A stretch of 64,000 nt of DNA, from contig JBLDXI010000073.1 of the NCBI GenBank assembly GCA_047495785.1, forward strand, positions 124,001-188,000. Reading direction: 5' to 3'. This document shows, piece by piece, positions 3,001 to 43,377 of the stretch. How positions within the stretch are numbered: position 1 is the stretch's first letter; every line of letters begins with the position of its first letter. Position numbers and translations under genes: made by a program. This DNA is from Lepidodermella squamata (lineage: Eukaryota > Animalia > Gastrotricha). The notes beneath the pieces were generated by a model that saw only the letters and a list, made by a program, of their open reading frames with translations, was not told the origin of the DNA and searched no databases.

Positions 3001-3520
3001 AGTAGCGCCCTGCCCACCCAGTGGGCCTTCGGAACCTTGCACGCCTTGGGGACCTTGCGAACCAAGCGGACCTTGCGGGCCTGAAAATCACGAATAAATT
3101 CATGCAAGCTTCAAACCTCAACTTCGAAGATCGCAACTGTACCTTGAGAACCTAGCGGGCCCTGATCTCCGGTTGCACCAGTCACTCCCGTCGCACCTGC
3201 AGCGGGGCAAAACCGAAGTAGCTCAAAGTTTCGAACAAGCTCGGCTCATTCACGTACCTTGTTGACCTGTGGCTCCATCAGCGCCTGAATGGTTTCACAA
3301 AACAAGAGAAATCGTAACCAAGAGCCTGGATCCTAGCTTCAAAGCTCACCTGTCGCTCCAGTAGCGCCCTGCCCACCCAGTGGGCCTTCGGAACCTTGCA
3401 CGCCTTGGGGACCTTGCGAACCAAGCGGACCTTGCGGGCCTGAAAATCACGAATAAATTCATGCAAGCTTCAAACCTCAACTTCGAAGATCGCAACTGTA
3501 CCTTGAGAACCTAGCGGGCC
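1..3520 (-). repeat. Tandem array of about 9.8 near-identical 359-bp units, each 3 exons (90+27+54 bp) and 3 introns (65+61+62 bp)
   Basis: ORF track recurs every 359 bp. Example exons 478-567, 386-412 and 271-324 are bounded by GT/AG on the minus strand and encode [57 protein letters not shown]. Confidence 0.95.
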
Positions 3521-5269
3521 TTGAGGACCCTGCGCGCCTATCGGACCTTGCGATCCCGAAAATAAGGAAATTACATAATTTTTGATATTTTTTGTGATGC
3601 TCACCTTGAAGACCTGGCAATCCTTGCAACCCTTGACTGCCTTGAGTACCTGTAATGTTTTTAAGTGGAAATGCTAATGCTATCTACATAGTCATTTTCC
3701 AGTAATTTCACCAGTAGGTCCTTGGACCCCAACGTCGCCTGAAAATAAGCAAGCTATGAATCTTTTCAAATAGAAGTTCAAGTCATACCGTTAGCTCCCT
3801 TGTCACCAGTAGTGCCAGTTGCACCTTTTGAATTCAAGTCACTTTTGTATTTAATTCCTCGACAATCCGCTTACCATTCGAACCCTTATCACCTGCTGCC
3901 CCGGTTGGACCAGTTGGTCCCGTTTTTCCCAATGTTCCTGAACAATAAACAAAGTTTTTAAGATTCAACTGAATTGAACATTATCCCACCCTTTGCGCCT
4001 TGAGTTCCTGTTGTACCAGTTTGCCCTGTCGCGCCGGTCGGTCCAGTTGGCCCTAGCCTCCCTAGATGAATAACACGTTAATTATAGATTGAGGCATAGT
4101 TCATAGCCTTGCCTTGAGCTCCTTGAGGTCCTAAAAGACGAAATACGAACATGATCACAAACATTATTTTTCCAGAACCAGCAACTTACCATTCGCACCT
4201 GGAAAATTCAGAAATTAAACTCAGAGTTTGTGAGTCCTGAAAACACTCACCTTGAACTCCAGGTAGACCTTGTTCTCCAACAGGACCCGTGGGTCCTGTA
4301 GGTCCAAAAGATCCAATGGGTCCTGTTGGACCAGTTGGACCCGTAGGACCCGTCGGCCCGGTCGGTGCGCTAACTACGTCTCGCACTAAAATTCAGAACA
4401 ATTAAGAAACATATTGATGACGGAAATATTTGTATAAATATGCCTCATCACTAGGTAGTTTAAGGACCGAATAGATGGGGAAAAATTATCGAAAAAGCTA
4501 TTGCAAACACGCTTTGATTTATATTCCGAATTTTGAAATTTGGCAATAAAATAAATTCTTCCCATGGTAAATCCCATGAGCCGAGCGCGCGTGTTCTCGG
4601 TCGCAAGATCAAGTCCGAAGACCAGTGAGAAATAATTGTAAAAATAAAAAAATTACAAATGAAAATTTATGAATGAATAAATAATAAACGATTCATTAAT
4701 TCATTAATTAAAATCATAAAAAATAAAAAACTATAAATTAAAACAAATAAAAAAAAAAAATCTGTGAGTATTTTTTCGGCTATGAATTGATCAGGAACCT
4801 TTGCGATTTCGCAGATTTTTATCAAAAATTTTTGAAATTTGAAAGATTCGATTTTTTGAATTTTTTCTAAAATTCGAAATCTGAATCCGAAATTGCAAAG
4901 AGGATTGAGGAGGAATTATTGCTGAAAGTTCTATGTCCAAATGCATTTTTCCTAATAGAGAGAATTTTTAAGAAATAATTAATTCACAACTTTTGGATAA
5001 ATAATTTCCGCCCTAACCACGCACATTTTTTAGGAAATTGGTTTTGAATATGGGTAATTTAAGAACAAATTCTTTTAATATACGATAAATTGAAAAGCAT
5101 GAAAAATTGGTTCCAAAAAATTACAATGAATTTGCTACTGTTTGATGGTTGATTTTCGAAATTTTCCGAAATTTTCAGTAGGAAATAAAATCTGGCGATA
5201 GTGAAACTGACCAGACAGAAGAACCATGACTGAGAGCAAACCGGTCGACTGCAATCTTCCCCCAACCAT
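1..5269 (-). CDS. Collagen-like gene 1 (5' part; 3' end lies outside the window), secreted, Gly-X-Y cassette array
   Basis: ATG at 5269. Exon 5212-5269 encodes [19 protein letters not shown] (signal-like). Phase-1 exons 4251-4385, 4190-4198, 4113-4130, 3990-4061, 3875-3937, 3789-3824, 3712-3738, 3605-3649 and 3502-3555 are followed by repeating 90/27/54-bp exons. All join into continuous Gly-X-Y. Confidence 0.85.
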
Positions 5270-11983: not shown

Positions 11984-12887
11984 TCTGTGCTATCATCGGA
12001 TGAATTCATTGAGGTTGATTAGGAAACCTTAGTAGTTGAAAACCAGTGGATTCATAAATTATATGCTGCGAAGATACATTGCGATCAAATAAATGAGCAA
12101 TTTTCCGAGCTTTTCTACAAGTCAAAGTTCCAATTTAAATCGAATGAAATCGAAGGCAACACTTTGACAATCAAAGAATTGCCGTTCCTTCAAAACCTAA
12201 CTGCAACAAGATAACCCACTAAGTCTAAATTTGTCTCTGTTACCCCCTTTGCTGTTGAGATTACCAAGAGATGCAGACAAACCAAAAGACCTTTTAATGT
12301 TTCTAGGCTGAGTTGAACATGCTAAGTGCTAAGTAGCTGATGCATAGATCGAGCACAGTGGGGTCTTACTTCTTGAACTGAAAAAGGGACATAAGAATGA
12401 CCCAACAAAGTTTGACAGCTGCGACGACGCAAACTCAACAAATATTATCAGAGAGCTAGCATTTAGACTGTGAGAAAGGTCGGGGGAGCGTCATTCACTA
12501 CGGGGAAAATCTATAATATTAGAGTTTTTCAATTCATAATGAGATAACTGAAATAAAAATCAGAGGCTCACCAATATTGAAAATTCTCAAATTTTAAAAG
12601 CCATGAGAATTTTTCGAAGACAATTTACTAGAAACCATTGAGCGACAGCTGTCAGTCAGCTTAGGCCTCTTTAATCAATAGGATAAATTTATAATTTAGC
12701 CGTCCCAAGATTATATGTTATATTACAAGAAATATCTTTGAAAATACTTGTTTTTAAGCATACCAAAATATTTATTTGTGAAAATATATAGAGATGCATT
12801 TTTCCATTAATAAATAAATAAATAAATATATATATTTCAATTCATATATTTCACATTAGTTTTTGGTAGTTTTTGTAGCGATAAATG

Positions 12888-15800
12888 CTAAGCGTAGTTT
12901 GCCAGGCTTTCGAGCAGAATTTGTTGAACTGCGTTCCGGACTGTTTCGAGATCGAATGGGCCAGGAGGACCACGAGGGCCGGGAAGACCGATGCCGTTAC
13001 GACCAGCGGGACCAGAAGGACCAGCGGGACCAGTCGCGCCATCTCTACCAGAAGTACCAGGAAGGCCAACGCCAGTTGGACCAGGAAGGCCAACGCCAGT
13101 TGGACCAGGAAGGCCAACGCCAGTTGGACCAGGAAGGCCAACGCCAGTTGGACCAGTGGGACCAGTATCGCCGGCTCTTCCAGGGAGACCAACACCTGGT
13201 CGACCAGCAGAGCCCGTTGGGCCAGTCATGCCAATACCTGTCGGACCAGTAGGACCTGTGACACCATCCCTGCCATCTCGGCCAGCCGGACCAGCAGGGC
13301 CCATTGCGCCTGCAATACCGGTCGCACCATTGTTACCATTCCTACCGGTCGGACCAGTCGGACCAGTCACTCCTAGGTCACCTGAGAACACGTAAAATTA
13401 TTTTTAATAGTCAAAAGGCATTATCATCACCTTTCTGCCCCTTGTCTCCTTTAGGTGCCATATCTCCAGAAATGCCCTTGTCACCTAAAAACAAAAGGAA
13501 AGCACGCCATGAGACCATGATCTATCCGACGAAATTGGAAAAGATCCCTTGCGTACCGGCAATCATCGGACATTGATCGCAACTAAATAAAACTACGTTT
13601 TCCAACTCACCTTGCAGGCCTTGAGGACCTTGCGAACCAAGCGGACCTTGCGGGCCTGAAAATCACGAATAAATTCATGCAAGCTTCAAACCTCAACTTC
13701 GAAGATCGCAACTATACCTTGAGAACCTAGCGGGCCCTGATCTCCGGTTGCACCAGTCACTCCCGTCGCACCTGCAGCGGGGCAAAACCGAAGTAGCTCA
13801 AAGTTTCGAAGAAGCTCGGCTCATTCACGTACCTTGTTGACCTGTGGCTCCATCAGCGCCTGAATGGTTTCACAAAACAAGAGAAATCGTAACCAAGAGC
13901 CTGGATCCTAGCTTCAACGCTCACCTGTCGCTCCAGTAGCGCCCTGCCCACCCAGTGGGCCTTCGGAACCTTGCACGCCTTGGGGACCTTGAGCGCCAAC
14001 GACACCTTGCGGGCCTGAAAATCACGAATAAATTCATGCAAGCTTCAAACCTCAACTGCGAAGCTCAGAACTGTACCTTGAGAACCTAGCGGACCCTGTT
14101 CTCCAGTGGCACCAGTAACACCGGTCGCACCTGTAGCGGGGCGAAATCGGAACAAACGCCAGTTGAGAAGCTTGCTCTCGCTTCGAACCGAGCTCATTCA
14201 CGTACCTTGTTGACCTGTGGCTCCTTCAGCGCCTGCATGGTTTTACAAAACAAGAGAAATTCCAGTCAAGAGGCTTCATCATAGCTTCAATGCTCACCTG
14301 TCGATCCAGTAGGGCCTTGCGCACCCATGGGACCTTCGGAACCTGAAAGTGAGAGCAGAAATTTAGCATCCAGAATAATCGAATCTCGAAGCCCGAGATT
14401 CCCGAACTCACCAAGCACGCCTTGGGGACCTTGAGCGCCAACGACACCTTGCGGGCCTGAAAATCACGAATAAATTCATGCAAGCTTCAAACCTCAACTG
14501 CGAAGCTCAGAACTGTACCTTGAGAACCTAGCGGACCCTGTTCTCCAGTGGCACCAGGAACACCGGTCGCACCTGTAGCGGGGCGAAATCGGAACAAACG
14601 CCAGTTGAGAAGCTTGCTCTCGCTTCGAACCGAGCTCATTCACGTACCTTGTTGACCTGTGGCTCCTTCAGCGCCTGCATGGTTTTACAAAACAAGAGAA
14701 ATTCCAGTCAAGAGGCTTCATCATAGCTTCAATGCTCACCTGTCGATCCAGTAGGGCCTTGCGCACCCATGGGACCTTCGGAACCTGAAAGTGAGAGCAG
14801 AAAATTAGCATCCAGAATAATCGAATCTCGAAGCCCGAGATTCCCGAACTCACCAAGCACGCCTTGGGGACCTTGAGCGCCAACGACACCTTGCGGGCCT
14901 GAAAATCACGAATAAATTCATGCAAGCTTCAAACCTCAACTGCGAAGCTCAGAACTGTACCTTGAGAACCTAGCGGACCCTGTTCTCCAGTGGCACCAGT
15001 AACACCGGTCGCACCTGTAGCGGGGCGAAATCGGAACAAACGCCAGTTGAGAAGCTTGCTCTCGCTTCGAACCGAGCTCATTCACGTACCTTGTTGACCT
15101 GTGGCTCCTTCAGCGCCTGCATGGTTTTACAAAACAAGAGAAATTCCAGTCAAGAGGCTTCATCATAGCTTCAATGCTCACCTGTCGATCCAGTAGGGCC
15201 TTGCGCACCCATGGGACCTTCGGAACCTGAAAGTGAGAGCAGAAAATTAGCATCCAGAATAATCGAATCTCGAAACCCGAGATTCCCGAACTCACCAAGC
15301 ACGCCTTGGGGACCTTGAGCGCCAACGACACCTTGCGGGCCTGAAAATCACGAATAAATTCATGCAAGCTTCAAACCTCAACTGCGAAGCTCAGAACTGT
15401 ACCTTGAGAACCTAGCGGACCCTGTTCTCCAGTGGCACCAGGAACACCGGTCGCACCTGTAGCGGGGCGAAATCGGAACAAACGCCAGTTGAGAAGCTTG
15501 CTCTCGCTTCGAACCGAGCTCATTCACGTACCTTGTTGACCTGTGGCTCCTTCAGCGCCTGCATGGTTTTACAAAACAAGAGAAATTCCAGTCAAGAGGC
15601 TTCATCATAGCTTCAATGCTCACCTGTCGATCCAGTAGGGCCTTGCGCACCCATGGGACCTTCGGAACCTGAAAGTGAGAGCAGAAATTTAGCATCCAGA
15701 ATAATCGAATCTCGAAGCCCGAGATTCCCGAACTCACCAAGCACGCCTTGGGGACCTTGAGCGCCAACGACACCTTGCGGGCCTGAAAATCACGAATAAA

Positions 15801-18800
15801 TTCATGCAAGCTTCAAACCTCAACTGCGAAGCTCAGAACTGTACCTTGAGAACCTAGCGGACCCTGTTCTCCAGTGGCACCAGGAACACCGGTCGCACCT
15901 GTAGCGGGGCGAAATCGGAACAAACGCCAGTTGAGAAGCTTGCTCTCGCTTCGAACCGAGCTCATTCACGTACCTTGTTGACCTGTGGCTCCTTCAGCGC
16001 CTGCATGGTTTTACAAAACAAGAGAAATTCCAGTCAAGAGGCTTCATCATAGCTTCAATGCTCACCTGTCGATCCAGTAGGGCCTTGCGCACCCATGGGA
16101 CCTTCGGAACCTGAAAGTGAGAGCAGAAAATTAGCATCCAGAATAATCGAATCTCGAAGCCCGAGATTCCCGAACTCACCAAGCACGCCTTGGGGACCTT
16201 GAGCGCCAACGACACCTTGCGGGCCTGAAAATCACGAATAAATTCATGCAAGCTTCAAACCTCAACTGCGAAGCTCAGAACTGTACCTTGAGAACCTAGC
16301 GGACCCTGTTCTCCAGTGGCACCAGTAACACCGGTCGCACCTGTAGCGGGGCGAAATCGGAACAAACGCCAGTTGAGAAGCTTGCTCTCGCTTCGAACCG
16401 AGCTCATTCACGTACCTTGTTGACCTGTGGCTCCTTCAGCGCCTGCATGGTTTTACAAAACAAGAGAAATTCCAGTCAAGAGGCTTCATCATAGCTTCAA
16501 TGCTCACCTGTCGATCCAGTAGGGCCTTGCGCACCCATGGGACCTTCGGAACCTGAAAGTGAGAGCAGAAAATTAGCATCCAGAATAATCGAATCTCGAA
16601 ACCCGAGATTCCCGAACTCACCAAGCACGCCTTGGGGACCTTGAGCGCCAACGACACCTTGCGGGCCTGAAAATCACGAATAAATTCATGCAAGCTTCAA
16701 ACCTCAACTGCGAAGCTCAGAACTGTACCTTGAGAACCTAGCGGACCCTGTTCTCCAGTGGCACCAGTAACACCGGTCGCACCTGTAGCGGGGCGAAATC
16801 GGAACAAACGCCAGTTGAGAAGCTTGCTCTCGCTTCGAACCGAGCTCATTCACGTACCTTGTTGACCTGTGGCTCCTTCAGCGCCTGCATGGTTTTACAA
16901 AACAAGAGAAATTCCAGTCAAGAGGCTTCATCATAGCTTCAATGCTCACCTGTCGATCCAGTAGGGCCTTGCGCACCCATGGGACCTTCGGAACCTGAAA
17001 GTGAGAGCAGAAAATTAGCATCCAGAATAATCGAATCTCGAAGCCCGAGATTCCCGAACTCACCAAGCACGCCTTGGGGACCTTGAGCGCCAACGACACC
17101 TTGCGGGCCTGAAAATCACGAATAAATTCATGCAAGCTTCAAACCTCAACTGCGAAGCTCAGAACTGTACCTTGAGAACCTAGCGGACCCTGTTCTCCAG
17201 TGGCACCAGTAACACCGGTCGCACCTGTAGCGGGGCGAAATCGGAACAAACGCCAGTTGAGAAGCTTGCTCTCGCTTCGAACCGAGCTCATTCACGTACC
17301 TTGTTGACCTGTGGCTCCTTCAGCGCCTGCATGGTTTTACAAAACAAGAGAAATTCCAGTCAAGAGGCTTCATCATAGCTTCAATGCTCACCTGTCGATC
17401 CAGTAGGGCCTTGCGCACCCATGGGACCTTCGGAACCTGAAAGTGAGAGCAGAAATTTAGCATCCAGAATAATCGAATCTCGAAGCCCGAGATTCCCGAA
17501 CTCACCAAGCACGCCTTGGGGACCTTGAGCGCCAACGACACCTTGCGGGCCTGAAAATCACGAATAAATTCATGCAAGCTTCAAACCTCAACTGCGAAGC
17601 TCAGAACTGTACCTTGAGAACCTAGCGGACCCTGTTCTCCAGTGGCACCAGTAACACCGGTCGCACCTGTAGCGGGGCGAAATCGGAACAAACGCCAGTT
17701 GAGAAGCTTGCTCTCGCTTCGAACCGAGCTCATTCACGTACCTTGTTGACCTGTGGCTCCTTCAGCGCCTGCATGGTTTTACAAAACAAGAGAAATTCCA
17801 GTCAAGAGGCTTCATCATAGCTTCAATGCTCACCTGTCGATCCAGTAGGGCCTTGCGCACCCATGGGACCTTCGGAACCTGAAAGTGAGAGCAGAAAATT
17901 AGCATCCAGAATAATCGAATCTCGAAGCCCGAGATTCCCGAACTCACCAAGCACGCCTTGGGGACCTTGAGCGCCAACGACACCTTGCGGGCCTGAAAAT
18001 CACGAATAAATTCATGCAAGCTTCAAACCTCAACTGCGAAGCTCAGAACTGTACCTTGAGAACCTAGCGGACCCTGTTCTCCAGTGGCACCAGTAACACC
18101 GGTCGCACCTGTAGCGGGGCGAAATCGGAACAAACGCCAGTTGAGAAGCTTGCTCTCGCTTCGAACCGAGCTCATTCACGTACCTTGTTGACCTGTGGCT
18201 CCTTCAGCGCCTGCATGGTTTTACAAAACAAGAGAAATTCCAGTCAAGAGGCTTCATCATAGCTTCAATGCTCACCTGTCGATCCAGTAGGGCCTTGCGC
18301 ACCCATGGGACCTTCGGAACCTGAAAGTGAGAGCAGAAAATTAGCATCCAGAATAATCGAATCTCGAAGCCCGAGATTCCCGAACTCACCAAGCACGCCT
18401 TGGGGACCTTGAGCGCCAACGACACCTTGCGGGCCTGAAAATCACGAATAAATTCATGCAAGCTTCAAACCTCAACTGCGAAGCTCAGAACTGTACCTTG
18501 AGAACCTAGCGGACCCTGTTCTCCAGTGGCACCAGTAACACCGGTCGCACCTGTAGCGGGGCGAAATCGGAACAAACGCCAGTTGAGAAGCTTGCTCTCG
18601 CTTCGAACCGAGCTCATTCACGTACCTTGTTGACCTGTGGCTCCTTCAGCGCCTGCATGGTTTTACAAAACAAGAGAAATTCCAGTCAAGAGGCTTCATC
18701 ATAGCTTCAATGCTCACCTGTCGATCCAGTAGGGCCTTGCGCACCCATGGGACCTTCGGAACCTGAAAGTGAGAGCAGAAAATTAGCATCCAGAATAATC

Positions 18801-21800
18801 GAATCTCGAAGCCCGAGATTCCCGAACTCACCAAGCACGCCTTGGGGACCTTGAGCGCCAACGACACCTTGCGGGCCTGAAAATCACGAATAAATTCATG
18901 CAAGCTTCAAACCTCAACTGCGAAGCTCAGAACTGTACCTTGAGAACCTAGCGGACCCTGTTCTCCAGTGGCACCAGTAACACCGGTCGCACCTGTAGCG
19001 GGGCGAAATCGGAACAAACGCCAGTTGAGAAGCTTGCTCTCGCTTCGAACCGAGCTCATTCACGTACCTTGTTGACCTGTGGCTCCTTCAGCGCCTGCAT
19101 GGTTTTACAAAACAAGAGAAATTCCAGTCAAGAGGCTTCATCATAGCTTCAATGCTCACCTGTCGATCCAGTAGGGCCTTGCGCACCCATGGGACCTTCG
19201 GAACCTGAAAGTGAGAGCAGAAAATTAGCATCCAGAATAATCGAATCTCGAAGCCCGAGATTCCCGAACTCACCAAGCACGCCTTGGGGACCTTGAGCGC
19301 CAACGACACCTTGCGGGCCTGAAAATCACGAATAAATTCATGCAAGCTTCAAACCTCAACTGCGAAGCTCAGAACTGTACCTTGAGAACCTAGCGGACCC
19401 TGTTCTCCAGTGGCACCAGTAACACCGGTCGCACCTGTAGCGGGGCGAAATCGGAACAAACGCCAGTTGAGAAGCTTGCTCTCGCTTCGAACCGAGCTCA
19501 TTCACGTACCTTGTTGACCTGTGGCTCCTTCAGCGCCTGCATGGTTTTACAAAACAAGAGAAATTCCAGTCAAGAGGCTTCATCATAGCTTCAATGCTCA
19601 CCTGTCGATCCAGTAGGGCCTTGCGCACCCATGGGACCTTCGGAACCTGAAAGTGAGAGCAGAAAATTAGCATCCAGAATAATCGAATCTCGAAGCCCGA
19701 GATTCCCGAACTCACCAAGCACGCCTTGGGGACCTTGAGCGCCAACGACACCTTGCGGGCCTGAAAATCACGAATAAATTCATGCAAGCTTCAAACCTCA
19801 ACTGCGAAGCTCAGAACTGTACCTTGAGAACCTAGCGGACCCTGTTCTCCAGTGGCACCAGTAACACCGGTCGCACCTGTAGCGGGGCGAAATCGGAACA
19901 AACGCCAGTTGAGAAGCTTGCTCTCGCTTCGAACCGAGCTCATTCACGTACCTTGTTGACCTGTGGCTCCTTCAGCGCCTGCATGGTTTTACAAAACAAG
20001 AGAAATTCCAGTCAAGAGGCTTCATCATAGCTTCAATGCTCACCTGTCGATCCAGTAGGGCCTTGCGCACCCATGGGACCTTCGGAACCTGAAAGTGAGA
20101 GCAGAAAATTAGCATCCAGAATAATCGAATCTCGAAGCCCGAGATTCCCGAACTCACCAAGCACGCCTTGGGGACCTTGAGCGCCAACGACACCTTGCGG
20201 GCCTGAAAATCACGAATAAATTCATGCAAGCTTCAAACCTCAACTGCGAAGCTCAGAACTGTACCTTGAGAACCTAGCGGACCCTGTTCTCCAGTGGCAC
20301 CAGTAACACCGGTCGCACCTGTAGCGGGGCGAAATCGGAACAAACGCCAGTTGAGAAGCTTGCTCTCGCTTCGAACCGAGCTCATTCACGTACCTTGTTG
20401 ACCTGTGGCTCCTTCAGCGCCTGCATGGTTTTACAAAACAAGAGAAATTCCAGTCAAGAGGCTTCATCATAGCTTCAATGCTCACCTGTCGATCCAGTAG
20501 GGCCTTGCGCACCCATGGGACCTTCGGAACCTGAAAGTGAGAGCAGAAAATTAGCATCCAGAATAATCGAATCTCGAAGCCCGAGATTCCCGAACTCACC
20601 AAGCACGCCTTGGGGACCTTGAGCGCCAACGACACCTTGCGGGCCTGAAAATCACGAATAAATTCATGCAAGCTTCAAACCTCAACTGCGAAGCTCAGAA
20701 CTGTACCTTGAGAACCTAGCGGACCCTGTTCTCCAGTGGCACCAGTAACACCGGTCGCACCTGTAGCGGGGCGAAATCGGAACAAACGCCAGTTAAGAAG
20801 CTTGCTCTCGCTTCGAACCGAGCTCATTCACGTACCTTGTTGACCTGTGGCTCCTTCAGCGCCTGCATGGTTTTACAAAACAAGAGAAATTCCAGTCAAG
20901 AGGCTTCATCATAGCTTCAATGCTCACCTGTCGATCCAGTAGGGCCTTGCGCACCCATGGGACCTTCGGAACCTGAAAGTGAGAGCAGAAAATTAGCATC
21001 CAGAATAATCGAATCTCGAAGCCCGAGATTCCCGAACTCACCAAGCACGCCTTGGGGACCTTGAGCGCCAACGACACCTTGCGGGCCTGAAAATCACGAA
21101 TAAATTCATGCAAGCTTCAAACCTCAACTGCGAAGCTCAGAACTGTACCTTGAGAACCTAGCGGACCCTGTTCTCCAGTGGCACCAGTAACACCGGTCGC
21201 ACCTGTAGCGGGGCGAAATCGGAACAAACGCCAGTTGAGAAGCTTGCTCTCGCTTCGAACCGAGCTCATTCACGTACCTTGTTGACCTGTGGCTCCTTCA
21301 GCGCCTGCATGGTTTTACAAAACAAGAGAAATTCCAGTCAAGAGGCTTCATCATAGCTTCAATGCTCACCTGTCGATCCAGTAGGGCCTTGCGCACCCAT
21401 GGGACCTTCGGAACCTGAAAGTGAGAGCAGAAAATTAGCATCCAGAATAATCGAATCTCGAAGCCCGAGATTCCCGAACTCACCAAGCACGCCTTGGGGA
21501 CCTTGAGCGCCAACGACACCTTGCGGGCCTGAAAATCACGAATAAATTCATGCAAGCTTCAAACCTCAACTGCGAAGCTCAGAACTGTACCTTGAGAACC
21601 TAGCGGACCCTGTTCTCCAGTGGCACCAGTAACACCGGTCGCACCTGTAGCGGGGCGAAATCGGAACAAACGCCAGTTGAGAAGCTTGCTCTCGCTTCGA
21701 ACCGAGCTCATTCACGTACCTTGTTGACCTGTGGCTCCTTCAGCGCCTGCATGGTTTTACAAAACAAGAGAAATTCCAGTCAAGAGGCTTCATCATAGCT

Positions 21801-24800
21801 TCAATGCTCACCTGTCGATCCAGTAGGGCCTTGCGCACCCATGGGACCTTCGGAACCTGAAAGTGAGAGCAGAAAATTAGCATCCAGAATAATCGAATCT
21901 CGAAGCCCGAGATTCCCGAACTCACCAAGCACGCCTTGGGGACCTTGAGCGCCAACGACACCTTGCGGGCCTGAAAATCACGAATAAATTCATGCAAGCT
22001 TCAAACCTCAACTGCGAAGCTCAGAACTGTACCTTGAGAACCTAGCGGACCCTGTTCTCCAGTGGCACCAGTAACACCGGTCGCACCTGTAGCGGGGCGA
22101 AATCGGAACAAACGCCAGTTGAGAAGCTTGCTCTCGCTTCGAACCGAGCTCATTCACGTACCTTGTTGACCTGTGGCTCCTTCAGCGCCTGCATGGTTTT
22201 ACAAAACAAGAGAAATTCCAGTCAAGAGGCTTCATCATAGCTTCAATGCTCACCTGTCGATCCAGTAGGGCCTTGCGCACCCATGGGACCTTCGGAACCT
22301 GAAAGTGAGAGCAGAAATTTAGCATCCAGAATAATCGAATCTCGAAGCCCGAGATTCCCGAACTCACCAAGCACGCCTTGGGGACCTTGAGCGCCAACGA
22401 CACCTTGCGGGCCTGAAAATCACGAATAAATTCATGCAAGCTTCAAACCTCAACTGCGAAGCTCAGAACTGTACCTTGAGAACCTAGCGGACCCTGTTCT
22501 CCAGTGGCACCAGTAACACCGGTCGCACCTGTAGCGGGGCGAAATCGGAACAAACGCCAGTTGAGAAGCTTGCTCTCGCTTCGAACCGAGCTCATTCACG
22601 TACCTTGTTGACCTGTGGCTCCTTCAGCGCCTGCATGGTTTTACAAAACAAGAGAAATTCCAGTCAAGAGGCTTCATCATAGCTTCAATGCTCACCTGTC
22701 GATCCAGTAGGGCCTTGCGCACCCATGGGACCTTCGGAACCTGAAAGTGAGAGCAGAAATTTAGCATCCAGAATAATCGAATCTCGAAGCCCGAGATTCC
22801 CGAACTCACCAAGCACGCCTTGGGGACCTTGAGCGCCAACGACACCTTGCGGGCCTGAAAATCACGAATAAATTCATGCAAGCTTCAAACCTCAACTGCG
22901 AAGCTCAGAACTGTACCTTGAGAACCTAGCGGACCCTGTTCTCCAGTGGCACCAGTAACACCGGTCGCACCTGTAGCGGGGCGAAATCGGAACAAACGCC
23001 AGTTAAGAAGCTTGCTCTCGCTTCGAACCGAGCTCATTCACGTACCTTGTTGACCTGTGGCTCCTTCAGCGCCTGCATGGTTTTACAAAACAAGAGAAAT
23101 TCCAGTCAAGAGGCTTCATCATAGCTTCAATGCTCACCTGTCGATCCAGTAGGGCCTTGCGCACCCATGGGACCTTCGGAACCTGAAAGTGAGAGCAGAA
23201 AATTAGCATCCAGAATAATCGAATCTCGAAGCCCGAGATTCCCGAACTCACCAAGCACGCCTTGGGGACCTTGAGCGCCAACGACACCTTGCGGGCCTGA
23301 AAATCACGAATAAATTCATGCAAGCTTCAAACCTCAACTGCGAAGCTCAGAACTGTACCTTGAGAACCTAGCGGACCCTGTTCTCCAGTGGCACCAGTAA
23401 CACCGGTCGCACCTGTAGCGGGGCGAAATCGGAACAAACGCCAGTTGAGAAGCTTGCTCTCGCTTCGAACCGAGCTCATTCACGTACCTTGTTGACCTGT
23501 GGCTCCTTCAGCGCCTGCATGGTTTTACAAAACAAGAGAAATTCCAGTCAAGAGGCTTCATCATAGCTTCAATGCTCACCTGTCGATCCAGTAGGGCCTT
23601 GCGCACCCATGGGACCTTCGGAACCTGAAAGTGAGAGCAGAAAATTAGCATCCAGAATAATCGAATCTCGAAGCCCGAGATTCCCGAACTCACCAAGCAC
23701 GCCTTGGGGACCTTGAGCGCCAACGACACCTTGCGGGCCTGAAAATCACGAATAAATTCATGCAAGCTTCAAACCTCAACTGCGAAGCTCAGAACTGTAC
23801 CTTGAGAACCTAGCGGACCCTGTTCTCCAGTGGCACCAGTAACACCGGTCGCACCTGTAGCGGGGCGAAATCGGAACAAACGCCAGTTGAGAAGCTTGCT
23901 CTCGCTTCGAACCGAGCTCATTCACGTACCTTGTTGACCTGTGGCTCCTTCAGCGCCTGCATGGTTTTACAAAACAAGAGAAATTCCAGTCAAGAGGCTT
24001 CATCATAGCTTCAATGCTCACCTGTCGATCCAGTAGGGCCTTGCGCACCCATGGGACCTTCGGAACCTGAAAGTGAGAGCAGAAAATTAGCATCCAGAAT
24101 AATCGAATCTCGAAGCCCGAGATTCCCGAACTCACCAAGCACGCCTTGGGGACCTTGAGCGCCAACGACACCTTGCGGGCCTGAAAATCACGAATAAATT
24201 CATGCAAGCTTCAAACCTCAACTGCGAAGCTCAGAACTGTACCTTGAGAACCTAGCGGACCCTGTTCTCCAGTGGCACCAGTAACACCGGTCGCACCTGT
24301 AGCGGGGCGAAATCGGAACAAACGCCAGTTGAGAAGCTTGCTCTCGCTTCGAACCGAGCTCATTCACGTACCTTGTTGACCTGTGGCTCCTTCAGCGCCT
24401 GCATGGTTTTACAAAACAAGAGAAATTCCAGTCAAGAGGCTTCATCATAGCTTCAATGCTCACCTGTCGATCCAGTAGGGCCTTGCGCACCCATGGGACC
24501 TTCGGAACCTGAAAGTGAGAGCAGAAAATTAGCATCCAGAATAATCGAATCTCGAAGCCCGAGATTCCCGAACTCACCAAGCACGCCTTGGGGACCTTGA
24601 GCGCCAACGACACCTTGCGGGCCTGAAAATCACGAATAAATTCATGCAAGCTTCAAACCTCAACTGCGAAGCTCAGAACTGTACCTTGAGAACCTAGCGG
24701 ACCCTGTTCTCCAGTGGCACCAGTAACACCGGTCGCACCTGTAGCGGGGCGAAATCGGAACAAACGCCAGTTGAGAAGCTTGCTCTCGCTTCGAACCGAG

Positions 24801-27800
24801 CTCATTCACGTACCTTGTTGACCTGTGGCTCCTTCAGCGCCTGCATGGTTTTACAAAACAAGAGAAATTCCAGTCAAGAGGCTTCATCATAGCTTCAATG
24901 CTCACCTGTCGATCCAGTAGGGCCTTGCGCACCCATGGGACCTTCGGAACCTGAAAGTGAGAGCAGAAAATTAGCATCCAGAATAATCGAATCTCGAAGC
25001 CCGAGATTCCCGAACTCACCAAGCACGCCTTGGGGACCTTGAGCGCCAACGACACCTTGCGGGCCTGAAAATCACGAATAAATTCATGCAAGCTTCAAAC
25101 CTCAACTGCGAAGCTCAGAACTGTACCTTGAGAACCTAGCGGACCCTGTTCTCCAGTGGCACCAGTAACACCGGTCGCACCTGTAGCGGGGCGAAATCGG
25201 AACAAACGCCAGTTGAGAAGCTTGCTCTCGCTTCGAACCGAGCTCATTCACGTACCTTGTTGACCTGTGGCTCCTTCAGCGCCTGCATGGTTTTACAAAA
25301 CAAGAGAAATTCCAGTCAAGAGGCTTCATCATAGCTTCAATGCTCACCTGTCGATCCAGTAGGGCCTTGCGCACCCATGGGACCTTCGGAACCTGAAAGT
25401 GAGAGCAGAAAATTAGCATCCAGAATAATCGAATCTCGAAGCCCGAGATTCCCGAACTCACCAAGCACGCCTTGGGGACCTTGAGCGCCAACGACACCTT
25501 GCGGGCCTGAAAATCACGAATAAATTCATGCAAGCTTCAAACCTCAACTGCGAAGCTCAGAACTGTACCTTGAGAACCTAGCGGACCCTGTTCTCCAGTG
25601 GCACCAGTAACACCGGTCGCACCTGTAGCGGGGCGAAATCGGAACAAACGCCAGTTGAGAAGCTTGCTCTCGCTTCGAACCGAGCTCATTCACGTACCTT
25701 GTTGACCTGTGGCTCCTTCAGCGCCTGCATGGTTTTACAAAACAAGAGAAATTCCAGTCAAGAGGCTTCATCATAGCTTCAATGCTCACCTGTCGATCCA
25801 GTAGGGCCTTGCGCACCCATGGGACCTTCGGAACCTGAAAGTGAGAGCAGAAAATTAGCATCCAGAATAATCGAATCTCGAAGCCCGAGATTCCCGAACT
25901 CACCAAGCACGCCTTGGGGACCTTGAGCGCCAACGACACCTTGCGGGCCTGAAAATCACGAATAAATTCATGCAAGCTTCAAACCTCAACTGCGAAGCTC
26001 AGAACTGTACCTTGAGAACCTAGCGGACCCTGTTCTCCAGTGGCACCAGTAACACCGGTCGCACCTGTAGCGGGGCGAAATCGGAACAAACGCCAGTTGA
26101 GAAGCTTGCTCTCGCTTCGAACCGAGCTCATTCACGTACCTTGTTGACCTGTGGCTCCTTCAGCGCCTGCATGGTTTTACAAAACAAGAGAAATTCCAGT
26201 CAAGAGGCTTCATCATAGCTTCAATGCTCACCTGTCGATCCAGTAGGGCCTTGCGCACCCATGGGACCTTCGGAACCTGAAAGTGAGAGCAGAAAATTAG
26301 CATCCAGAATAATCGAATCTCGAAGCCCGAGATTCCCGAACTCACCAAGCACGCCTTGGGGACCTTGAGCGCCAACGACACCTTGCGGGCCTGAAAATCA
26401 CGAATAAATTCATGCAAGCTTCAAACCTCAACTGCGAAGCTCAGAACTGTACCTTGAGAACCTAGCGGACCCTGTTCTCCAGTGGCACCAGTAACACCGG
26501 TCGCACCTGTAGCGGGGCGAAATCGGAACAAACGCCAGTTGAGAAGCTTGCTCTCGCTTCGAACCGAGCTCATTCACGTACCTTGTTGACCTGTGGCTCC
26601 TTCAGCGCCTGCATGGTTTTACAAAACAAGAGAAATTCCAGTCAAGAGGCTTCATCATAGCTTCAATGCTCACCTGTCGATCCAGTAGGGCCTTGCGCAC
26701 CCATGGGACCTTCGGAACCTGAAAGTGAGAGCAGAAAATTAGCATCCAGAATAATCGAATCTCGAAGCCCGAGATTCCCGAACTCACCAAGCACGCCTTG
26801 GGGACCTTGAGCGCCAACGACACCTTGCGGGCCTGAAAATCACGAATAAATTCATGCAAGCTTCAAACCTCAACTGCGAAGCTCAGAACTGTACCTTGAG
26901 AACCTAGCGGACCCTGTTCTCCAGTGGCACCAGTAACACCGGTCGCACCTGTAGCGGGGCGAAATCGGAACAAACGCCAGTTGAGAAGCTTGCTCTCGCT
27001 TCGAACCGAGCTCATTCACGTACCTTGTTGACCTGTGGCTCCTTCAGCGCCTGCATGGTTTTACAAAACAAGAGAAATTCCAGTCAAGAGGCTTCATCAT
27101 AGCTTCAATGCTCACCTGTCGATCCAGTAGGGCCTTGCGCACCCATGGGACCTTCGGAACCTGAAAGTGAGAGCAGAAAATTAGCATCCAGAATAATCGA
27201 ATCTCGAAGCCCGAGATTCCCGAACTCACCAAGCACGCCTTGGGGACCTTGAGCGCCAACGACACCTTGCGGGCCTGAAAATCACGAATAAATTCATGCA
27301 AGCTTCAAACCTCAACTGCGAAGCTCAGAACTGTACCTTGAGAACCTAGCGGACCCTGTTCTCCAGTGGCACCAGTAACACCGGTCGCACCTGTAGCGGG
27401 GCGAAATCGGAACAAACGCCAGTTGAGAAGCTTGCTCTCGCTTCGAACCGAGCTCATTCACGTACCTTGTTGACCTGTGGCTCCTTCAGCGCCTGCATGG
27501 TTTTACAAAACAAGAGAAATTCCAGTCAAGAGGCTTCATCATAGCTTCAATGCTCACCTGTCGATCCAGTAGGGCCTTGCGCACCCATGGGACCTTCGGA
27601 ACCTGAAAGTGAGAGCAGAAAATTAGCATCCAGAATAATCGAATCTCGAAGCCCGTGATTCCCGAACTCACCAAGCACGCCTTGGGGACCTTGAGCGCCA
27701 ACGACACCTTGCGGGCCTGAAAATCACGAATAAATTCATGCAAGCTTCAAACCTCAACTGCGAAGCTCAGAACTGTACCTTGAGAACCTAGCGGACCCTG

Positions 27801-30800
27801 TTCTCCAGTGGCACCAGGAACACCGGTCGCACCTGTAGCGGGGCGAAATCGGAACAAACGCCAGTTGAGAAGCTTGCTCTCGCTTCGAACCGAGCTCATT
27901 CACGTACCTTGTTGACCTGTGGCTCCTTCAGCGCCTGCATGGTTTTACAAAACAAGAGAAATTCCAGTCAAGAGGCTTCATCATAGCTTCAATGCTCACC
28001 TGTCGATCCAGTAGGGCCTTGCGCACCCATGGGACCTTCGGAACCTGAAAGTGAGAGCAGAAATATAGCATCCAGAATAATCGAATCTCGAAGCCCGAGA
28101 TTCCCGAACTCACCAAGCACGCCTTGGGGACCTTGAGCGCCAACGACACCTTGCGGGCCTGAAAATCACGAATAAATTCATGCAAGCTTCAAACCTCAAC
28201 TGCGAAGCTCAGAACTGTACCTTGAGAACCTAGCGGACCCTGTTCTCCAGTGGCACCAGTAACACCGGTCGCACCTGTAGCGGGGCGAAATCGGAACAAA
28301 CGCCAGTTGAGAAGCTTGCTCTCGCTTCGAACCGAGCTCATTCACGTACCTTGTTGACCTGTGGCTCCTTCAGCGCCTGCATGGTTTTACAAAACAAGAG
28401 AAATTCCAGTCAAGAGGCTTCATCATAGCTTCAATGCTCACCTGTCGATCCAGTAGGGCCTTGCGCACCCATGGGACCTTCGGAACCTGAAAGTGAGAGC
28501 AGAAAATTAGCATCCAGAATAATCGAATCTCGAAGCCCGAGATTCCCGAACTCACCAAGCACGCCTTGGGGACCTTGAGCGCCAACGACACCTTGCGGGC
28601 CTGAAAATCACGAATAAATTCATGCAAGCTTCAAACCTCAACTGCGAAGCTCAGAACTGTACCTTGAGAACCTAGCGGACCCTGTTCTCCAGTGGCACCA
28701 GTAACACCGGTCGCACCTGTAGCGGGGCGAAATCGGAACAAACGCCAGTTGAGAAGCTTGCTCTCGCTTCGAACCGAGCTCATTCACGTACCTTGTTGAC
28801 CTGTGGCTCCTTCAGCGCCTGCATGGTTTTACAAAACAAGAGAAATTCCAGTCAAGAGGCTTCATCATAGCTTCAATGCTCACCTGTCGATCCAGTAGGG
28901 CCTTGCGCACCCATGGGACCTTCGGAACCTGAAAGTGAGAGCAGAAAATTAGCATCCAGAATAATCGAATCTCGAAGCCCGAGATTCCCGAACTCACCAA
29001 GCACGCCTTGGGGACCTTGAGCGCCAACGACACCTTGCGGGCCTGAAAATCACGAATAAATTCATGCAAGCTTCAAACCTCAACTGCGAAGCTCAGAACT
29101 GTACCTTGAGAACCTAGCGGACCCTGTTCTCCAGTGGCACCAGTAACACCGGTCGCACCTGTAGCGGGGCGAAATCGGAACAAACGCCAGTTGAGAAGCT
29201 TGCTCTCGCTTCGAACCGAGCTCATTCACGTACCTTGTTGACCTGTGGCTCCTTCAGCGCCTGCATGGTTTTACAAAACAAGAGAAATTCCAGTCAAGAG
29301 GCTTCATCATAGCTTCAATGCTCACCTGTCGATCCAGTAGGGCCTTGCGCACCCATGGGACCTTCGGAACCTGAAAGTGAGAGCAGAAATTTAGCATCCA
29401 GAATAATCGAATCTCGAAGCCCGAGATTCCCGAACTCACCAAGCACGCCTTGGGGACCTTGAGCGCCAACGACACCTTGCGGGCCTGAAAATCACGAATA
29501 AATTCATGCAAGCTTCAAACCTCAACTGCGAAGCTCAGAACTGTACCTTGAGAACCTAGCGGACCCTGTTCTCCAGTGGCACCAGTAACACCGGTCGCAC
29601 CTGTAGCGGGGCGAAATCGGAACAAACGCCAGTTGAGAAGCTTGCTCTCGCTTCGAACCGAGCTCATTCACGTACCTTGTTGACCTGTGGCTCCTTCAGC
29701 GCCTGCATGGTTTTACAAAACAAGAGAAATTCCAGTCAAGAGGCTTCATCATAGCTTCAATGCTCACCTGTCGATCCAGTAGGGCCTTGCGCACCCATGG
29801 GACCTTCGGAACCTGAAAGTGAGAGCAGAAAATTAGCATCCAGAATAATCGAATCTCGAAGCCCGAGATTCCCGAACTCACCAAGCACGCCTTGGGGACC
29901 TTGAGCGCCAACGACACCTTGCGGGCCTGAAAATCACGAATAAATTCATGCAAGCTTCAAACCTCAACTGCGAAGCTCAGAACTGTACCTTGAGAACCTA
30001 GCGGACCCTGTTCTCCAGTGGCACCAGTAACACCGGTCGCACCTGTAGCGGGGCGAAATCGGAACAAACGCCAGTTGAGAAGCTTGCTCTCGCTTCGAAC
30101 CGAGCTCATTCACGTACCTTGTTGACCTGTGGCTCCTTCAGCGCCTGCATGGTTTTACAAAACAAGAGAAATTCCAGTCAAGAGGCTTCATCATAGCTTC
30201 AATGCTCACCTGTCGATCCAGTAGGGCCTTGCGCACCCATGGGACCTTCGGAACCTGAAAGTGAGAGCAGAAAATTAGCATCCAGAATAATCGAATCTCG
30301 AAGCCCGAGATTCCCGAACTCACCAAGCACGCCTTGGGGACCTTGAGCGCCAACGACACCTTGCGGGCCTGAAAATCACGAATAAATTCATGCAAGCTTC
30401 AAACCTCAACTGCGAAGCTCAGAACTGTACCTTGAGAACCTAGCGGACCCTGTTCTCCAGTGGCACCAGTAACACCGGTCGCACCTGTAGCGGGGCGAAA
30501 TCGGAACAAACGCCAGTTGAGAAGCTTGCTCTCGCTTCGAACCGAGCTCATTCACGTACCTTGTTGACCTGTGGCTCCTTCAGCGCCTGCATGGTTTTAC
30601 AAAACAAGAGAAATTCCAGTCAAGAGGCTTCATCATAGCTTCAATGCTCACCTGTCGATCCAGTAGGGCCTTGCGCACCCATGGGACCTTCGGAACCTGA
30701 AAGTGAGAGCAGAAATTTAGCATCCAGAATAATCGAATCTCGAAGCCCGAGATTCCCGAACTCACCAAGCACGCCTTGGGGACCTTGAGCGCCAACGACA

Positions 30801-33779
30801 CCTTGCGGGCCTGAAAATCACGAATAAATTCATGCAAGCTTCAAACCTCAACTGCGAAGCTCAGAACTGTACCTTGAGAACCTAGCGGACCCTGTTCTCC
30901 AGTTGCACCAGTAACACCGGTCGGACCCGTCGGACCTGTCAGACCCTGAGGTCCAATTGAACCTAGTGATCCTGATAATACGAAAAACATATAATATTTG
31001 ATATCCTTGAAAAGGAAGCTAACCTTGTAGTCCTGGCAATCCCTGCAACCCTTGATTCCCTTGAATGCCTATGTTTTTGTGTAAAACGTTGCAATCCATA
31101 ATGTGATTTTTCATCAGTCTCACCAGTTGACCCTTGCACCCCAACATCGCCTAAAAATATCCAAGCTTCATGAATTTATTCTTTTTGATAAATAAAATAA
31201 TGTAACCTTTAGTTCCCTTGTCACCGGTAGGGCCAGTAGCGCCTGTTCAATAAAAGTTGTAATCCAGACATTCTTCCTTCGTAATTCGCTTACCATTCGA
31301 ACCCTTAGTACCTGCTGTACCAGTCGGGCCTGTCGGTCCAGTATTACCCAATGTTCCTGAAAAGTAAACAAGGGATTTAGGATTAAATCGATTTGAGCTC
31401 AATCTCCACCTTTCGAGCCTTGAATTCCTGTTGAACCAGTTGGCCCTGTCGGTCCAGTTGCCCCTAGCCTCCCTACATTTGCAATGCTTCAACTAAATAT
31501 TGAGATACAATATAAAGCCTTGCCTTGAGCTCCTTGAGGACCTTAAATAAAGAAACATGACTATGAATACAAAGAATATTTTTCACTTCCAGCAACTTAC
31601 CACTCGCGCCTAGAAAATTCAGAAATCAACGAAGATTTTGTCGAGTCCTGAAAACGCTTACCTTGAACTCCAGGTAGACCTTGTTCGCCAATAGGTCCAG
31701 TTGGCCCTGTTGGTCCTAAAGGTCCAGTAGGTCCTGTTGGGCCAGTCGGTCCGGTCGGTCCAGTTGGCGCGTCTGGCACAGGAGGAGCAGCAGCTGCTGG
31801 GTCTAATGCAATAAGACGATTAAAATGCAATATAAAAAAATGAAAAAAATGAAATTTAGCAATTCGAAAATTTTAAATTAGCTATAAATTTCATAAAAAT
31901 TATATTGAATATGAAAAATTGATAAAATTAGTTCACTTTTGGGAATTAGGAATTTGTTATATTAATATTAAAACTAAATTAATTTATTTGAAAAATTGAG
32001 ATTTTAAAACGAAATTTCAAGTTTCAATTTCAATTCTAAATTGAAAACTAAAAAATTGAAAATATATATTAAAATTAAAATTAATAATAAAATCGAAAAA
32101 TTCAGATTTTAAAACGAAATTTTTATTTTTCAATTTTGAAATTAAAAAATTAGGTTTTATTTGACCTACTAAAAAAAATGAAAAAATCTTACCAACAACC
32201 GGCCCAGCATCGCTAGGCGGATTCGTCGCTGTAGGATCAACCGCGTTAGGATCATCTATCGATAGGTCATTAGCACAATCACATTGACAACACTCTGAAT
32301 CATCCTCAATCTTGCCTGTAATATCACGCTTGCTACGACCGCCCCGGCCGCTCTGCAGATGTGCATTCACCAAATCCGTCCGAGCACAGTAGTGAATCGA
32401 CTGCTGACAGCACGTCACGCTTGTTTGCTTACAATCACCCGGGCACGCCGTGTTACCATCCAACAGAACAATCGAAGTGTAACCAGGCGAGCAGCTCGTA
32501 GCGCCAGTTATCGGGTTCGGAACGTTCAAATTCGAATCGGTACTCGACGAGAAGAACCCGGAAATTTCGCCATTTGCCACCGACGCGTTCCAGCACGCGA
32601 TTAAGCGGCAGGTTGACTTCAAATCGGCGGGGCTTTTCGGTTCGGAATTGCCGAGAATTCGAAACTCAACACCGTGGAAGCTACGGCAAAAGTGCGGCAT
32701 GGCCAGCGATGCGTCACAGGTCGTGAAAATTCCGCCGAAATTCGACGTTGGCTTCACGGCATTTGACACACATTGAGCGATGTAATGGCCGCATGTTGGC
32801 GTGTTGGGTTTCATCGGTTGTAGTAGGTAGTGGTCGTTTTGCGACGTGACGGCGCTTGGTTCGAAGCCGGTTGGGCACGATTTTTCGCCCGTGTGGCCGT
32901 TGATTTGACCGGGCGATTGGCACGGGCCGATTGTGTCCGTGAAAAAACCGCCGAATGCCATGAGCCGAGCGCGCGTGTTATCAGTCGCGAGGCCAAATTC
33001 GAACACCGCTGGAAAAATATTAGAAAATTATAAAAAAATAGTAAAAATAGCTTGAGAATTGAAAATTAAATTACAGGAATTAAATTAACGAATGAAAATT
33101 TATTGAAAATTTTTCCATATTTGGAATATTTTTCCACTGATTCAATAATTTTTTAATATTTCAATAAATTTCAAAAATTTCTCGAAAAATTGTTTATAAA
33201 AATCCGAACACATTTTTCGAATAATGTCTGTCAAACGAAAAAATTTTGTAAAATTGAAAATACTTCTGAATTTTTTCTTTTCAATTTTTCCTCAATTTAA
33301 TATTCATTTGACTCAATTCCTTTATTCAGAATTTTTTAATTTTTTCAATTTATTATTCCCTTTTTGGAAATTGAAAGGAAAGAAATTCTAGAAAGCTTGA
33401 TATTCGAATGACTAGTTCTAGGAATTTTTGAAATTTTGATTAAAAAATGTCCTCCAAGAAATCAATGTTTGTAACCCTGGATGATTCAGGTAAAATTTGC
33501 TAGAGAAAAATTCACGGCAAATCGCAAAAGCTTGAATCAATTGAAGCTATGAATCGCTTTCAAAGATTTTAAAAATTTAAATTAAATTATTTTCGGTTAT
33601 CATTTATTTTCGAAAAAATACCATGTGAAAAAGGAAATGTTTTTGAATTTTTTAGTTATCGAAAAAATATGCGGAAAAATCATTAAAATTCCTTATAGAG
33701 AGGTTTGATAGCAAAACTGACCACATAGAAGAACGGCGACTGAGAGCAAGCCGGTAGGCAGCAAACTTCCCCCAGCCAT
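12888..33779 (-). CDS. Giant collagen-like gene 2 (about 169 coding exons, about 2878 aa): signal peptide, MPEG1/Perforin-2 P2-like domain, RSKR, CCQCDC, about 2400-aa uninterrupted Gly-X-Y, short helical tail
   Basis: Exons 33722-33779 ([19 protein letters not shown]), 32193-33008, 31662-31802, 31601-31609, 31524-31541, 31410-31472, 31294-31356, 31207-31242, 31124-31150, 31024-31068, 30873-30971, 38 x (45+45+27+54), 13925-14014, 13833-13859, 13718-13771, 13611-13655, 13431-13484, 12888-13381. All introns are phase 1 and the summed CDS of 8637 nt is in frame. Confidence 0.9.
13063..13156 (-). repeat. 24-bp coding repeat (GPTGVGLP) x about 4 in the last collagen exon
   Basis: Direct repeats of ccaggaaggccaacgccagttgga give periodic G-X-G interruptions. 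Confidence 0.85.
14015..30920 (-). repeat. Tandem array of 38 near-identical 442-bp units, each 4 exons (45+45+27+54 bp) and 4 introns (69+65+75+62 bp)
   Basis: ORF track recurs every 442 bp from 14226 to 30580. Example exons 14412-14456, 14298-14342, 14206-14232 and 14077-14130 encode [57 protein letters not shown]. Confidence 0.97.
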
Positions 33780-42993: not shown

Positions 42994-43377
42994 CCTGGCC
43001 TACTTTTTCGAAAAAATGAATGGCAATAAATAAGTTGTGACGCAGATTTTTGTGTTTATTCAGCCGGACATGTCACGGAAATGTATTTACTCAATTTTTA
43101 TTGCGTTTATGATGTAATTCGGACAACCATCCGGGAATTTTCTAAACGGAAACACTTTAATGCTAATTCACCCTTCGCGGCTATTTCTGTTTTAAACGAG
43201 GATCCGGGTGTGTCTTGAAGTGCGAAAAAACTTGCGTTGAAGGGCTCTTAATTGCGTAATTAAAATTGCCCATGTGACACAAGTCAATTGTGAGGGAACA
43301 ATCTCGACCCCCCACTTTATAAATTGCCCTGTCGTCTTCAAAATTCTTGAATTAGTCCACATTCAACTCAAAACGCT

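Follow-up and report, generated by a model that had tools for sequence, protein, structure and literature searches.

A 64,000-nucleotide (nt) stretch of the genome of the gastrotrich Lepidodermella squamata (GenBank assembly GCA_047495785.1, contig JBLDXI010000073.1, positions 124,001 to 188,000), called the window here and numbered from its first letter, contains a collagen gene on the minus strand at 12888..33779. Probably the gene is functional and encodes a secreted collagen that is not of the fibrillar class; very recent unequal crossing-over, which brought a 442-bp unit to about 38 copies, would have extended its triple-helix region. An earlier note on the same DNA had proposed that what looks like a satellite here is in fact a giant collagen gene built by amplification of a cassette of four exons and four introns, and the analysis described below followed up that proposal.

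The repeated part of the gene is highly regular. Tandem Repeats Finder resolved 13973-30927 into 38.4 copies of a 442-bp period with 99% matches and 0% indels, and each of four anchor motifs occurs 38 times at a spacing of exactly 442 bp. An exon finder recovered 38 four-exon sets in this array (13973..30927, minus strand). Each unit holds exons of 45, 45, 27, and 54 nt and introns of 69, 65, 75, and 62 nt, and encodes 57 amino acids (aa), or 19 Gly-X-Y triplets, including the stretch [24 protein letters not shown]. The consensus is matched exactly by 24 of the 38 units, and the others deviate from it at 1 to 3 positions, so that identity among the units is 99.9%, introns included. This degree of likeness supports the amplification of a four-exon/four-intron cassette that had been proposed. 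We conclude that unequal exchange multiplied the 442-bp unit too recently for the introns to have become less uniform than the exons.

The array lies within a continuous gene model. Along the minus strand of the locus, short G+C-rich segments that encode Gly-X-Y alternate with A+T-richer GT...AG segments. The model was built with the exon finder, which looks for AG/G..G/GT borders and an open Gly-X-Y frame, and unique exons were added by hand. It comprises 169 exons with a coding sequence (CDS) of 8,637 nt for 2,878 aa. The CDS begins with an ATG at 33779, its length is divisible by three, and its only stop is the terminal one (12888-12890). All of the introns (168/168) are phase 1, and every internal collagen exon has a length divisible by 9 nt. 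The acceptors are all AG and the donors are all GT, with the exception of one GC donor (GCAAGG) after an 18-nt exon (31541-31524). At its longest, the Gly-X-Y pattern continues unbroken for exactly 800 triplets (aa 306-2705) and stops at GDM-APK, a change of Gly to Ala in the exon at 13484-13431. The 169 exons, the CDS length, the 800 triplets, and the GDM-APK break had all been reported before, and our independently built model gives identical counts. The 800-triplet run, further runs beyond it, and a Pfam match of the last exon to Collagen (PF01391, E value of 1.1e-12; no other Pfam family) place the predicted product in the collagen superfamily.

The array is flanked by unique exons, all on the minus strand. 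Exon 1 (33722..33779) carries the ATG and a hydrophobic N-terminus that resembles a signal peptide by inspection only, and it ends at a GTCAGT donor. Exon 2 (32193..33008), a single exon of 816 nt, encodes a Cys-rich head of three modules, followed by a furin-type site, RSKR (aa 244-247), and the cluster CCQCDC. Exon 3 (31662..31802) encodes an Ala/Pro-rich linker and the beginning of the triple-helix region, with GPT repeats. It is followed by unique 5' collagen exons of 9, 18 (the exon with the GC donor), 63, 63, 36, 27, 45, and 99 nt (30873..31609), in the last of which the 3' part is the sequence of the 54-nt cassette exon. On the far side of the array come a last, chimeric unit (13611..14014) with exons of 90, 27, 54, and 45 nt and without the 69-nt intron, the exon with the GDM-APK break, and the last exon (12888..13381), which encodes interrupted collagen, a short tail, and the stop. 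A candidate AATAAA polyadenylation signal was read from the sequence at 12771..12776, about 110 nt past the stop.

Tandem paralog and selection on the reading frame

A second collagen gene lies downstream on the minus strand (1..4400, also delimited as 1-4650) and runs off the window. Its repeat unit is 359 bp long, holds three exons (54, 90, and 27 nt), and is present in at least 9.8 copies. The unique 5' collagen exons of this paralog align to those of the cassette gene with conserved splice positions. One acceptor appears to have moved 9 nt downstream (CG for AG at ~3552), and the alignment contains a single internal indel within exons, an insertion of 9 nt that preserves the frame. The sole support for the micro-exons of 9 and 18 nt in the cassette gene is their conservation in the paralog, and skipping either one would leave the frame intact.

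Divergence between the unique exons of the two genes is 8.3% at codon position 1, 6.7% at position 2, and 32.8% at position 3, and the introns have diverged by 33%. Third positions have thus changed as fast as the introns, and first and second positions four to five times more slowly, which indicates that the modelled frame and its exon borders are under purifying selection. The repeat units follow the same pattern. The 442-bp and 359-bp units differ at 24 exonic sites, distributed 6/3/15 over codon positions 1/2/3, and in the encoded proteins every Gly is kept while 10 of the 57 residues are changed. With 15 of 24 differences between cassettes at third positions and the codon-position pattern of the unique exons, the claim that the apparent satellite is a protein-coding collagen gene is upheld.

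The two units also differ in structure. The 69-nt intron that separates the two 45-nt exons of the cassette (14343-14411 and equivalents) is exactly absent from the 359-bp unit, in which a single 90-nt exon (1914-2003) takes their place, and another intron of that unit has a 14-nt deletion. This difference in intron presence has been multiplied over the entire arrays of both genes. The last unit of the cassette gene (13611-14014) is of the 359-bp type, which implies either sequence exchange between the arrays or an ancestral unit common to both. No domain like the head was seen upstream of the collagen exons of the paralog within the window; only a short remnant near 4600 resembles the first residues of the head (…[11 protein letters not shown]…).

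Predicted protein and its relatives

The head domain could not be assigned by routine searches. Pfam returned no family at an E value of ≤0.1, a word-indexed protein search returned no matches, and the best score in an ESM Atlas feature search was only 0.61. A HMMER scan of 1.84 billion representative sequences yielded nine matches. Two of these (P0001 and P0002) are proteins that carry the same head domain, one (P0005) is a MACPF protein in which the MACPF domain is followed by six similar modules, and two (P0004 and P0009) are bacterial proteins built of many such modules. An alignment of three-module units (A2) revealed the common signature FGG...NPxTGxxSCPxG...C, and a profile of this alignment matched only MPEG1/perforin-2 in the PDB (E value of 6.6e-12). 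The profile of the head and its two closest relatives (A1, three sequences) also placed MPEG1 first (E value of 1e-3).

Structure prediction points in the same direction. A first AlphaFold2 model from the three-sequence alignment had a predicted local distance difference test (pLDDT) score of 47 and was discarded, and a 15-row alignment of three-module units was used to produce a model with a pLDDT of 72.5 and a predicted TM-score (pTM) of 0.72. The P2 domain of MPEG1 accounts for the top 16 Foldseek matches of this model and for the top eight matches in VIA (Z of 6.3 to 8.2, 25 to 30% identity), and MPEG1 ranks first in an ESM Atlas shape search. The next VIA matches are the MABP domain of MVB12B (Z of 4.7) and, with a Z of 4.6, a MACPF protein that is matched in the C-terminal part of its chain. 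Global TM-scores of the model are low (0.25 to 0.40), which makes this a partial fold match. Module 2 of the head is degenerate and lacks the NPxTG..SCP motif, and the loop that matches the lipid-binding hairpin of MPEG1 has a pLDDT below 50. On profile and model, then, the head is a predicted beta-prism of the MPEG1 P2/MABP type with a three-fold module repeat. The P2 domain of MPEG1 (PDB 6sb1 and 6u2k) binds acidic phospholipids via a beta-hairpin (PMC7593815). It resembles the head in having three FGG...NPxTGxxSCPxG modules; in contrast to MPEG1, the collagen protein has no MACPF domain, and its P2-like head is fused to collagen with a furin-type site between the two.

Two of the proteins found with the head are encoded on environmental contigs from metagenome assemblies (P0002 on L001 and P0001 on L002) with eukaryote-type neighbor genes. 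On both contigs, Gly-X-Y runs occur directly downstream of the open reading frame (ORF) for the head domain. L002 ends about 200 nt into its collagen region. The L001 homolog (L001:6001-9686) has a tail straight after its last triplet that shares the pattern PG-x-[FI]-D-[LI]-[ED]-x-[VI]-[RK]...IL-x-E-[SA]-[LM]-x-N with the tail of the L. squamata protein (pairwise E value of 8e-4). Its helix is charged and contains Cys, its collagen exons are larger and not repeated, and its introns are about 40 to 50 nt long. These comparisons indicate that a head joined to collagen is a conserved architecture with few known members, that the tail is common to the one homolog readable throughout, and that the cassette array, compared with L001, is specific to the L. 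squamata locus. The presence of an MPEG1-type P2/MABP head on a collagen is a new domain combination that recurs in uncultured eukaryotes. L001 also carries a gene for a furin-type protease, 4 kb upstream of the collagen homolog.

The helix is poor in Pro and rich in Thr and Gln. Pro makes up 9% of its residues, nearly all of them in the X position. The Y position is dominated by Gln (291 residues, 36%) and Thr (251 residues, 31%), followed by Leu, Glu, Val, and Met, with Pro in just 6 of 800 triplets. This dearth of Pro in the Y position implies that the helix would contain no hydroxyproline. The helix is strongly acidic (123 Asp and Glu versus 6 Lys and Arg; calculated pI of 4.05) and has no Cys and no Tyr. 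The last exon contains a perfect 24-nt repeat of 4.2 copies (13056-13156) that encodes (GPTGVGLP)x4, the only GPP-type triplets of the protein, and a GPRGPPGP motif. It ends with a 22-aa non-collagen tail (12891-12956, minus strand). At 0.286 nm per residue, the 2,400 residues of the unbroken run correspond to 686 nm, in agreement with the rod of about 0.7 μm proposed earlier; the predicted length of the helix is 0.69 to 0.73 μm.

These features suggest how the protein might be assembled. A signal peptide would direct secretion, and three identical chains would register and nucleate C-terminally through the GPP-type triplets and the 22-aa tail, which would be amphipathic. The helix would then zip towards the N-terminus to form a rod of about 0.7 μm, in keeping with the general C- to N-terminal direction of collagen folding (PMC11923368). 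The CCxCxC cluster just N-terminal of the helix would link the chains by disulfides. In place of hydroxyproline, helix stability could come from Gln and Thr in the Y position, with the Thr possibly O-glycosylated as in the cuticle collagen of a vent worm; a helix lacking hydroxyproline would require such glycosylation of Thr, or a comparable modification, to be stable. A furin-type convertase would cut at RSKR and release the P2-like head as a propeptide; if RSKR stayed uncut, the head could instead act as an anchor that fixes the rod at one end to a membrane or surface. N-terminal cleavage of the furin type is established for the cuticle collagens of Caenorhabditis elegans and for MACIT collagens (PMC10538796).

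Expression, unit number, and splicing

Several observations weigh against a functional gene of this kind. Only one public run holds this sequence. It is a DNA run, since its contigs are colinear through introns and upstream sequence, and public runs therefore contain no transcripts of the gene. The protein was not found in protein collections by word-indexed searches: the search with the head is described above, and the last exon retrieved generic collagen-like matches only, at ≤68% identity and with no self-match. A helix with 9% Pro, none of it in the Y position, may be only marginally stable unless it is modified. The paralog without a head means either that the head is dispensable in at least one copy or that this copy is decaying. 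Lastly, the near-identity of the units makes their intactness uninformative about selection on the array itself, as an intact frame is expected there with or without selection.

Some of these points would also fit a satellite-like expansion in a collagen gene that has ceased to produce protein. Such a young pseudogene would retain an intact array frame without selection as long as its units were 99.9% identical, and both the loss of the head from the neighboring paralog and the restriction of the public run to DNA are compatible with it. However, about 2.1 kb of unique coding sequence, including the single-exon head, is intact, third positions have diverged as much as introns while the other two positions have changed far more slowly, and the architecture is conserved in distant homologs. 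We consider a pseudogene very unlikely, and a functional collagen gene remains the favored interpretation.

The same public run provides a second view of the array. In a comparison with 30500-34300, it yields one 6.5-kb contig of the unique flank that shows no differences from the assembly and has a depth of 36.5. Unitigs of the 442-bp unit have a k-mer depth of 859 to 949 and include the tandem join (which goes back 428), and a variant with a depth of 588 to 599 continues into paralog intron sequence and thus represents the 359-bp unit. Relative to the flank, 859 to 949 corresponds to about 24 to 26 unit equivalents, not 38, although the same tracts occur 34 to 39 times in the window; depth ratios of this kind are rough, as they come from one run with no stated library type and a sample that may differ from the assembled one. 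The unitig breaks coincide with the commonest unit variant in the assembly (gap 30689-30716), which indicates that the small differences between units are present in the reads as well. The figure of 38 copies in the earlier note therefore stands for the assembly, which contains 38 four-exon sets and 38.4 repeat copies, and is not matched by the k-mer depth. The array is real DNA and large, and the count of 38 may be specific to one allele, polymorphic, mis-sized, or distorted by library bias.

It is quite plausible, if somewhat short of an even prospect, that the gene is real and that 38 is a mis-sized or polymorphic number, with a mean near 24 to 26 among haplotypes or individuals. The chain would then have about 530 to 570 uninterrupted triplets and form a rod of about 0.46 to 0.49 μm; for 24 units, the computed values are an unbroken run of 534 triplets and about 0.46 μm. 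Both the disparity between k-mer depth and assembled tracts and the proneness of near-identical arrays to unequal exchange argue for such a number. The roughness of the depth ratios argues against it, as do the ability of single long reads to span a 17-kb array and the coincidence of unit variants with unitig breaks, which suggests that the assembly reflects real variation among reads.

Variation in unit number would have a direct structural consequence. As all cassette exons have phase-1 borders and lengths divisible by 9 nt, the gain, loss, or skipping of any unit stays in frame, and unit number would thus set the length of the rod. Exons of this kind make a structural protein freely extensible. 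Tentatively, and on balance we think it unlikely, the locus could encode a length-tunable rod of about 0.45 to 0.75 μm, with a unit number that varies by allele or individual and an MABP/P2 head that binds a membrane or surface and can be removed by a convertase. The protein would then belong to an undescribed family, defined by P2 head, helix, and short conserved tail and shared with uncultured eukaryotes, that has been caught growing by the mechanism put forward in 1980 to explain how all collagen genes arose. If so, the 24 to 26 equivalents by depth versus the 38 assembled units would be the first hint of it.

The in-frame exons also allow an alternative at the level of RNA, in which the array is transcribed but splicing omits many of the cassette exons or joins them in alternative ways, giving a shorter and heterogeneous protein rather than a single 2,878-aa chain. 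Skipping would preserve the frame, splice sites repeated identically 38 times offer many equivalent pairings, and one cassette donor, GTACAG, is weak, lacking the usual G at +5. Against this, short introns favor intron-definition splicing of neighboring sites, and the cassette introns are only 62 to 75 nt long. In addition, long repetitive annelid collagens have been recovered at full length from transcriptomes (PMC12403961). We consider extensive skipping improbable.

Comparison with known collagens and other features of the window

The earlier note had measured the helix against the roughly 338 triplets of fibrillar collagens. That benchmark understates known lengths, since annelid collagens of 7,719 to 8,859 aa have been described from a genome and transcriptomes (8,859 aa in Alvinella pompejana and 7,719 to 8,689 aa in Paralvinella; PMC12403961), and the collagen described here is no record. 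Annelid cuticle collagens with micrometer-long helices and globular domains have been known biochemically for decades (PMC11766948). The giant annelid collagens share with the L. squamata chain a helix far longer than the fibrillar one and globular ends, and the cuticle collagen of Riftia, in which Thr in stabilizing Y positions is glycosylated (Mann et al. 1996, as cited in PMC11766948), likewise has Thr and not hydroxyproline in positions where Thr makes up 31% in the L. squamata helix. The comparison is one of features, and membership among the cuticle collagens is not claimed. The L. squamata chain is about one third as long as the giant annelid chains. It also differs in Y-position Pro, which occurs in 6 of 800 triplets versus 22 to 33% of counted G-X-P positions in alvinellid chains (PMC12403961). 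Descriptions of those annelid genes mention neither a P2-like head nor near-identical exon cassettes, both of which the L. squamata gene has.

Two other collagen classes were considered and rejected. A fibrillar collagen is ruled out by the missing COLFI C-propeptide (the tail is 22 aa, and Pfam finds Collagen only), by the phase-1 introns, and by the 800 triplets versus ~338. The exon sizes (54, 45, 27, and 99 nt) are similar to those of fibrillar helix exons (54/45/99/108 bp), but the latter begin with an intact Gly codon (PMC2852846), whereas all 168 introns here split a Gly codon. A nematode-type cuticle collagen (about 300 aa with interrupted Gly-X-Y blocks between conserved Cys) is ruled out by the 2,878 aa and the uninterrupted block of 2,400 residues. 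The cuticle collagens of C. elegans, which are cut by the convertase BLI-4 (PMC10538796), resemble the L. squamata chain in having a furin-type site N-terminal of the helix and Cys clusters beside Gly-X-Y; their chains, however, are short and their Gly-X-Y blocks interrupted, in contrast to 2,878 aa with an unbroken run of 800 triplets and a head predicted to fold as a beta-prism.

In the classical model, collagen genes arose by amplification of an exon-containing unit (Yamada 1980; Exposito 1993, with a 54+45-bp unit; as reviewed in PMC2852846). The gene described here fits this model in that tandem duplication and unequal crossing-over multiplied exons of 54, 45, and 27 nt along with the adjoining introns. 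It differs in that the event is recent, with units that are still nearly identical across their introns. In known collagen genes such events are ancient, and the introns no longer resemble one another; here the process can be seen almost as it took place, next to a paralog from which one intron is exactly absent. Literature searches with incomplete coverage turned up no further case of a collagen exon cassette amplified in recent times. Repeat masking is expected to hide such genes from annotation, and similar genes may be under-counted in surveys of the extracellular matrix. A close mechanistic parallel is the kringle IV-2 repeat of human LPA, a multi-exon unit that is tandemly repeated with its introns within the gene and whose number sets protein size. 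The fold and the unit size differ from those of the collagen, and copy-number polymorphism is established for LPA, whereas for the L. squamata gene it is only hinted at by the k-mer depth.

Rfam and tRNA scans of all 64,000 nt returned no matches. Elsewhere in the window, an interstitial telomere-like (ACCCTA)n tract of about 11 imperfect copies (39172-39238) sits between two exons (39666-39785 and 37783-38628) of a phosphoribosyl pyrophosphate (PRPP) synthetase gene, for which the named matches are metazoan only, at ≤63 to 67% identity. ORFs with ankyrin repeats at 34470-36144 and 51096-51716 encode hydrophobic, signal-peptide-like N-termini, which are unusual for ankyrin proteins. Four tandem ORFs on the plus strand (41926-47996; 355, 180, 269, and 179 aa) form a divergent family (21 to 27% identity, alignment A3) with the motifs FRLKLLSQD..VWSPSLESF and, at the C-terminus, CS.EF..L.EFA. 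A perfect 36-bp tandem repeat lies at 56903-57014 (3.1 copies, 100% identical). An intronless gene on the plus strand (60697-63351) encodes an 884-aa family-C receptor with an ANF_receptor domain. The clusters closest to it in the ESM Atlas carry a diatom label (score of 0.97), which is odd beside a metazoan-like PRPP synthetase.

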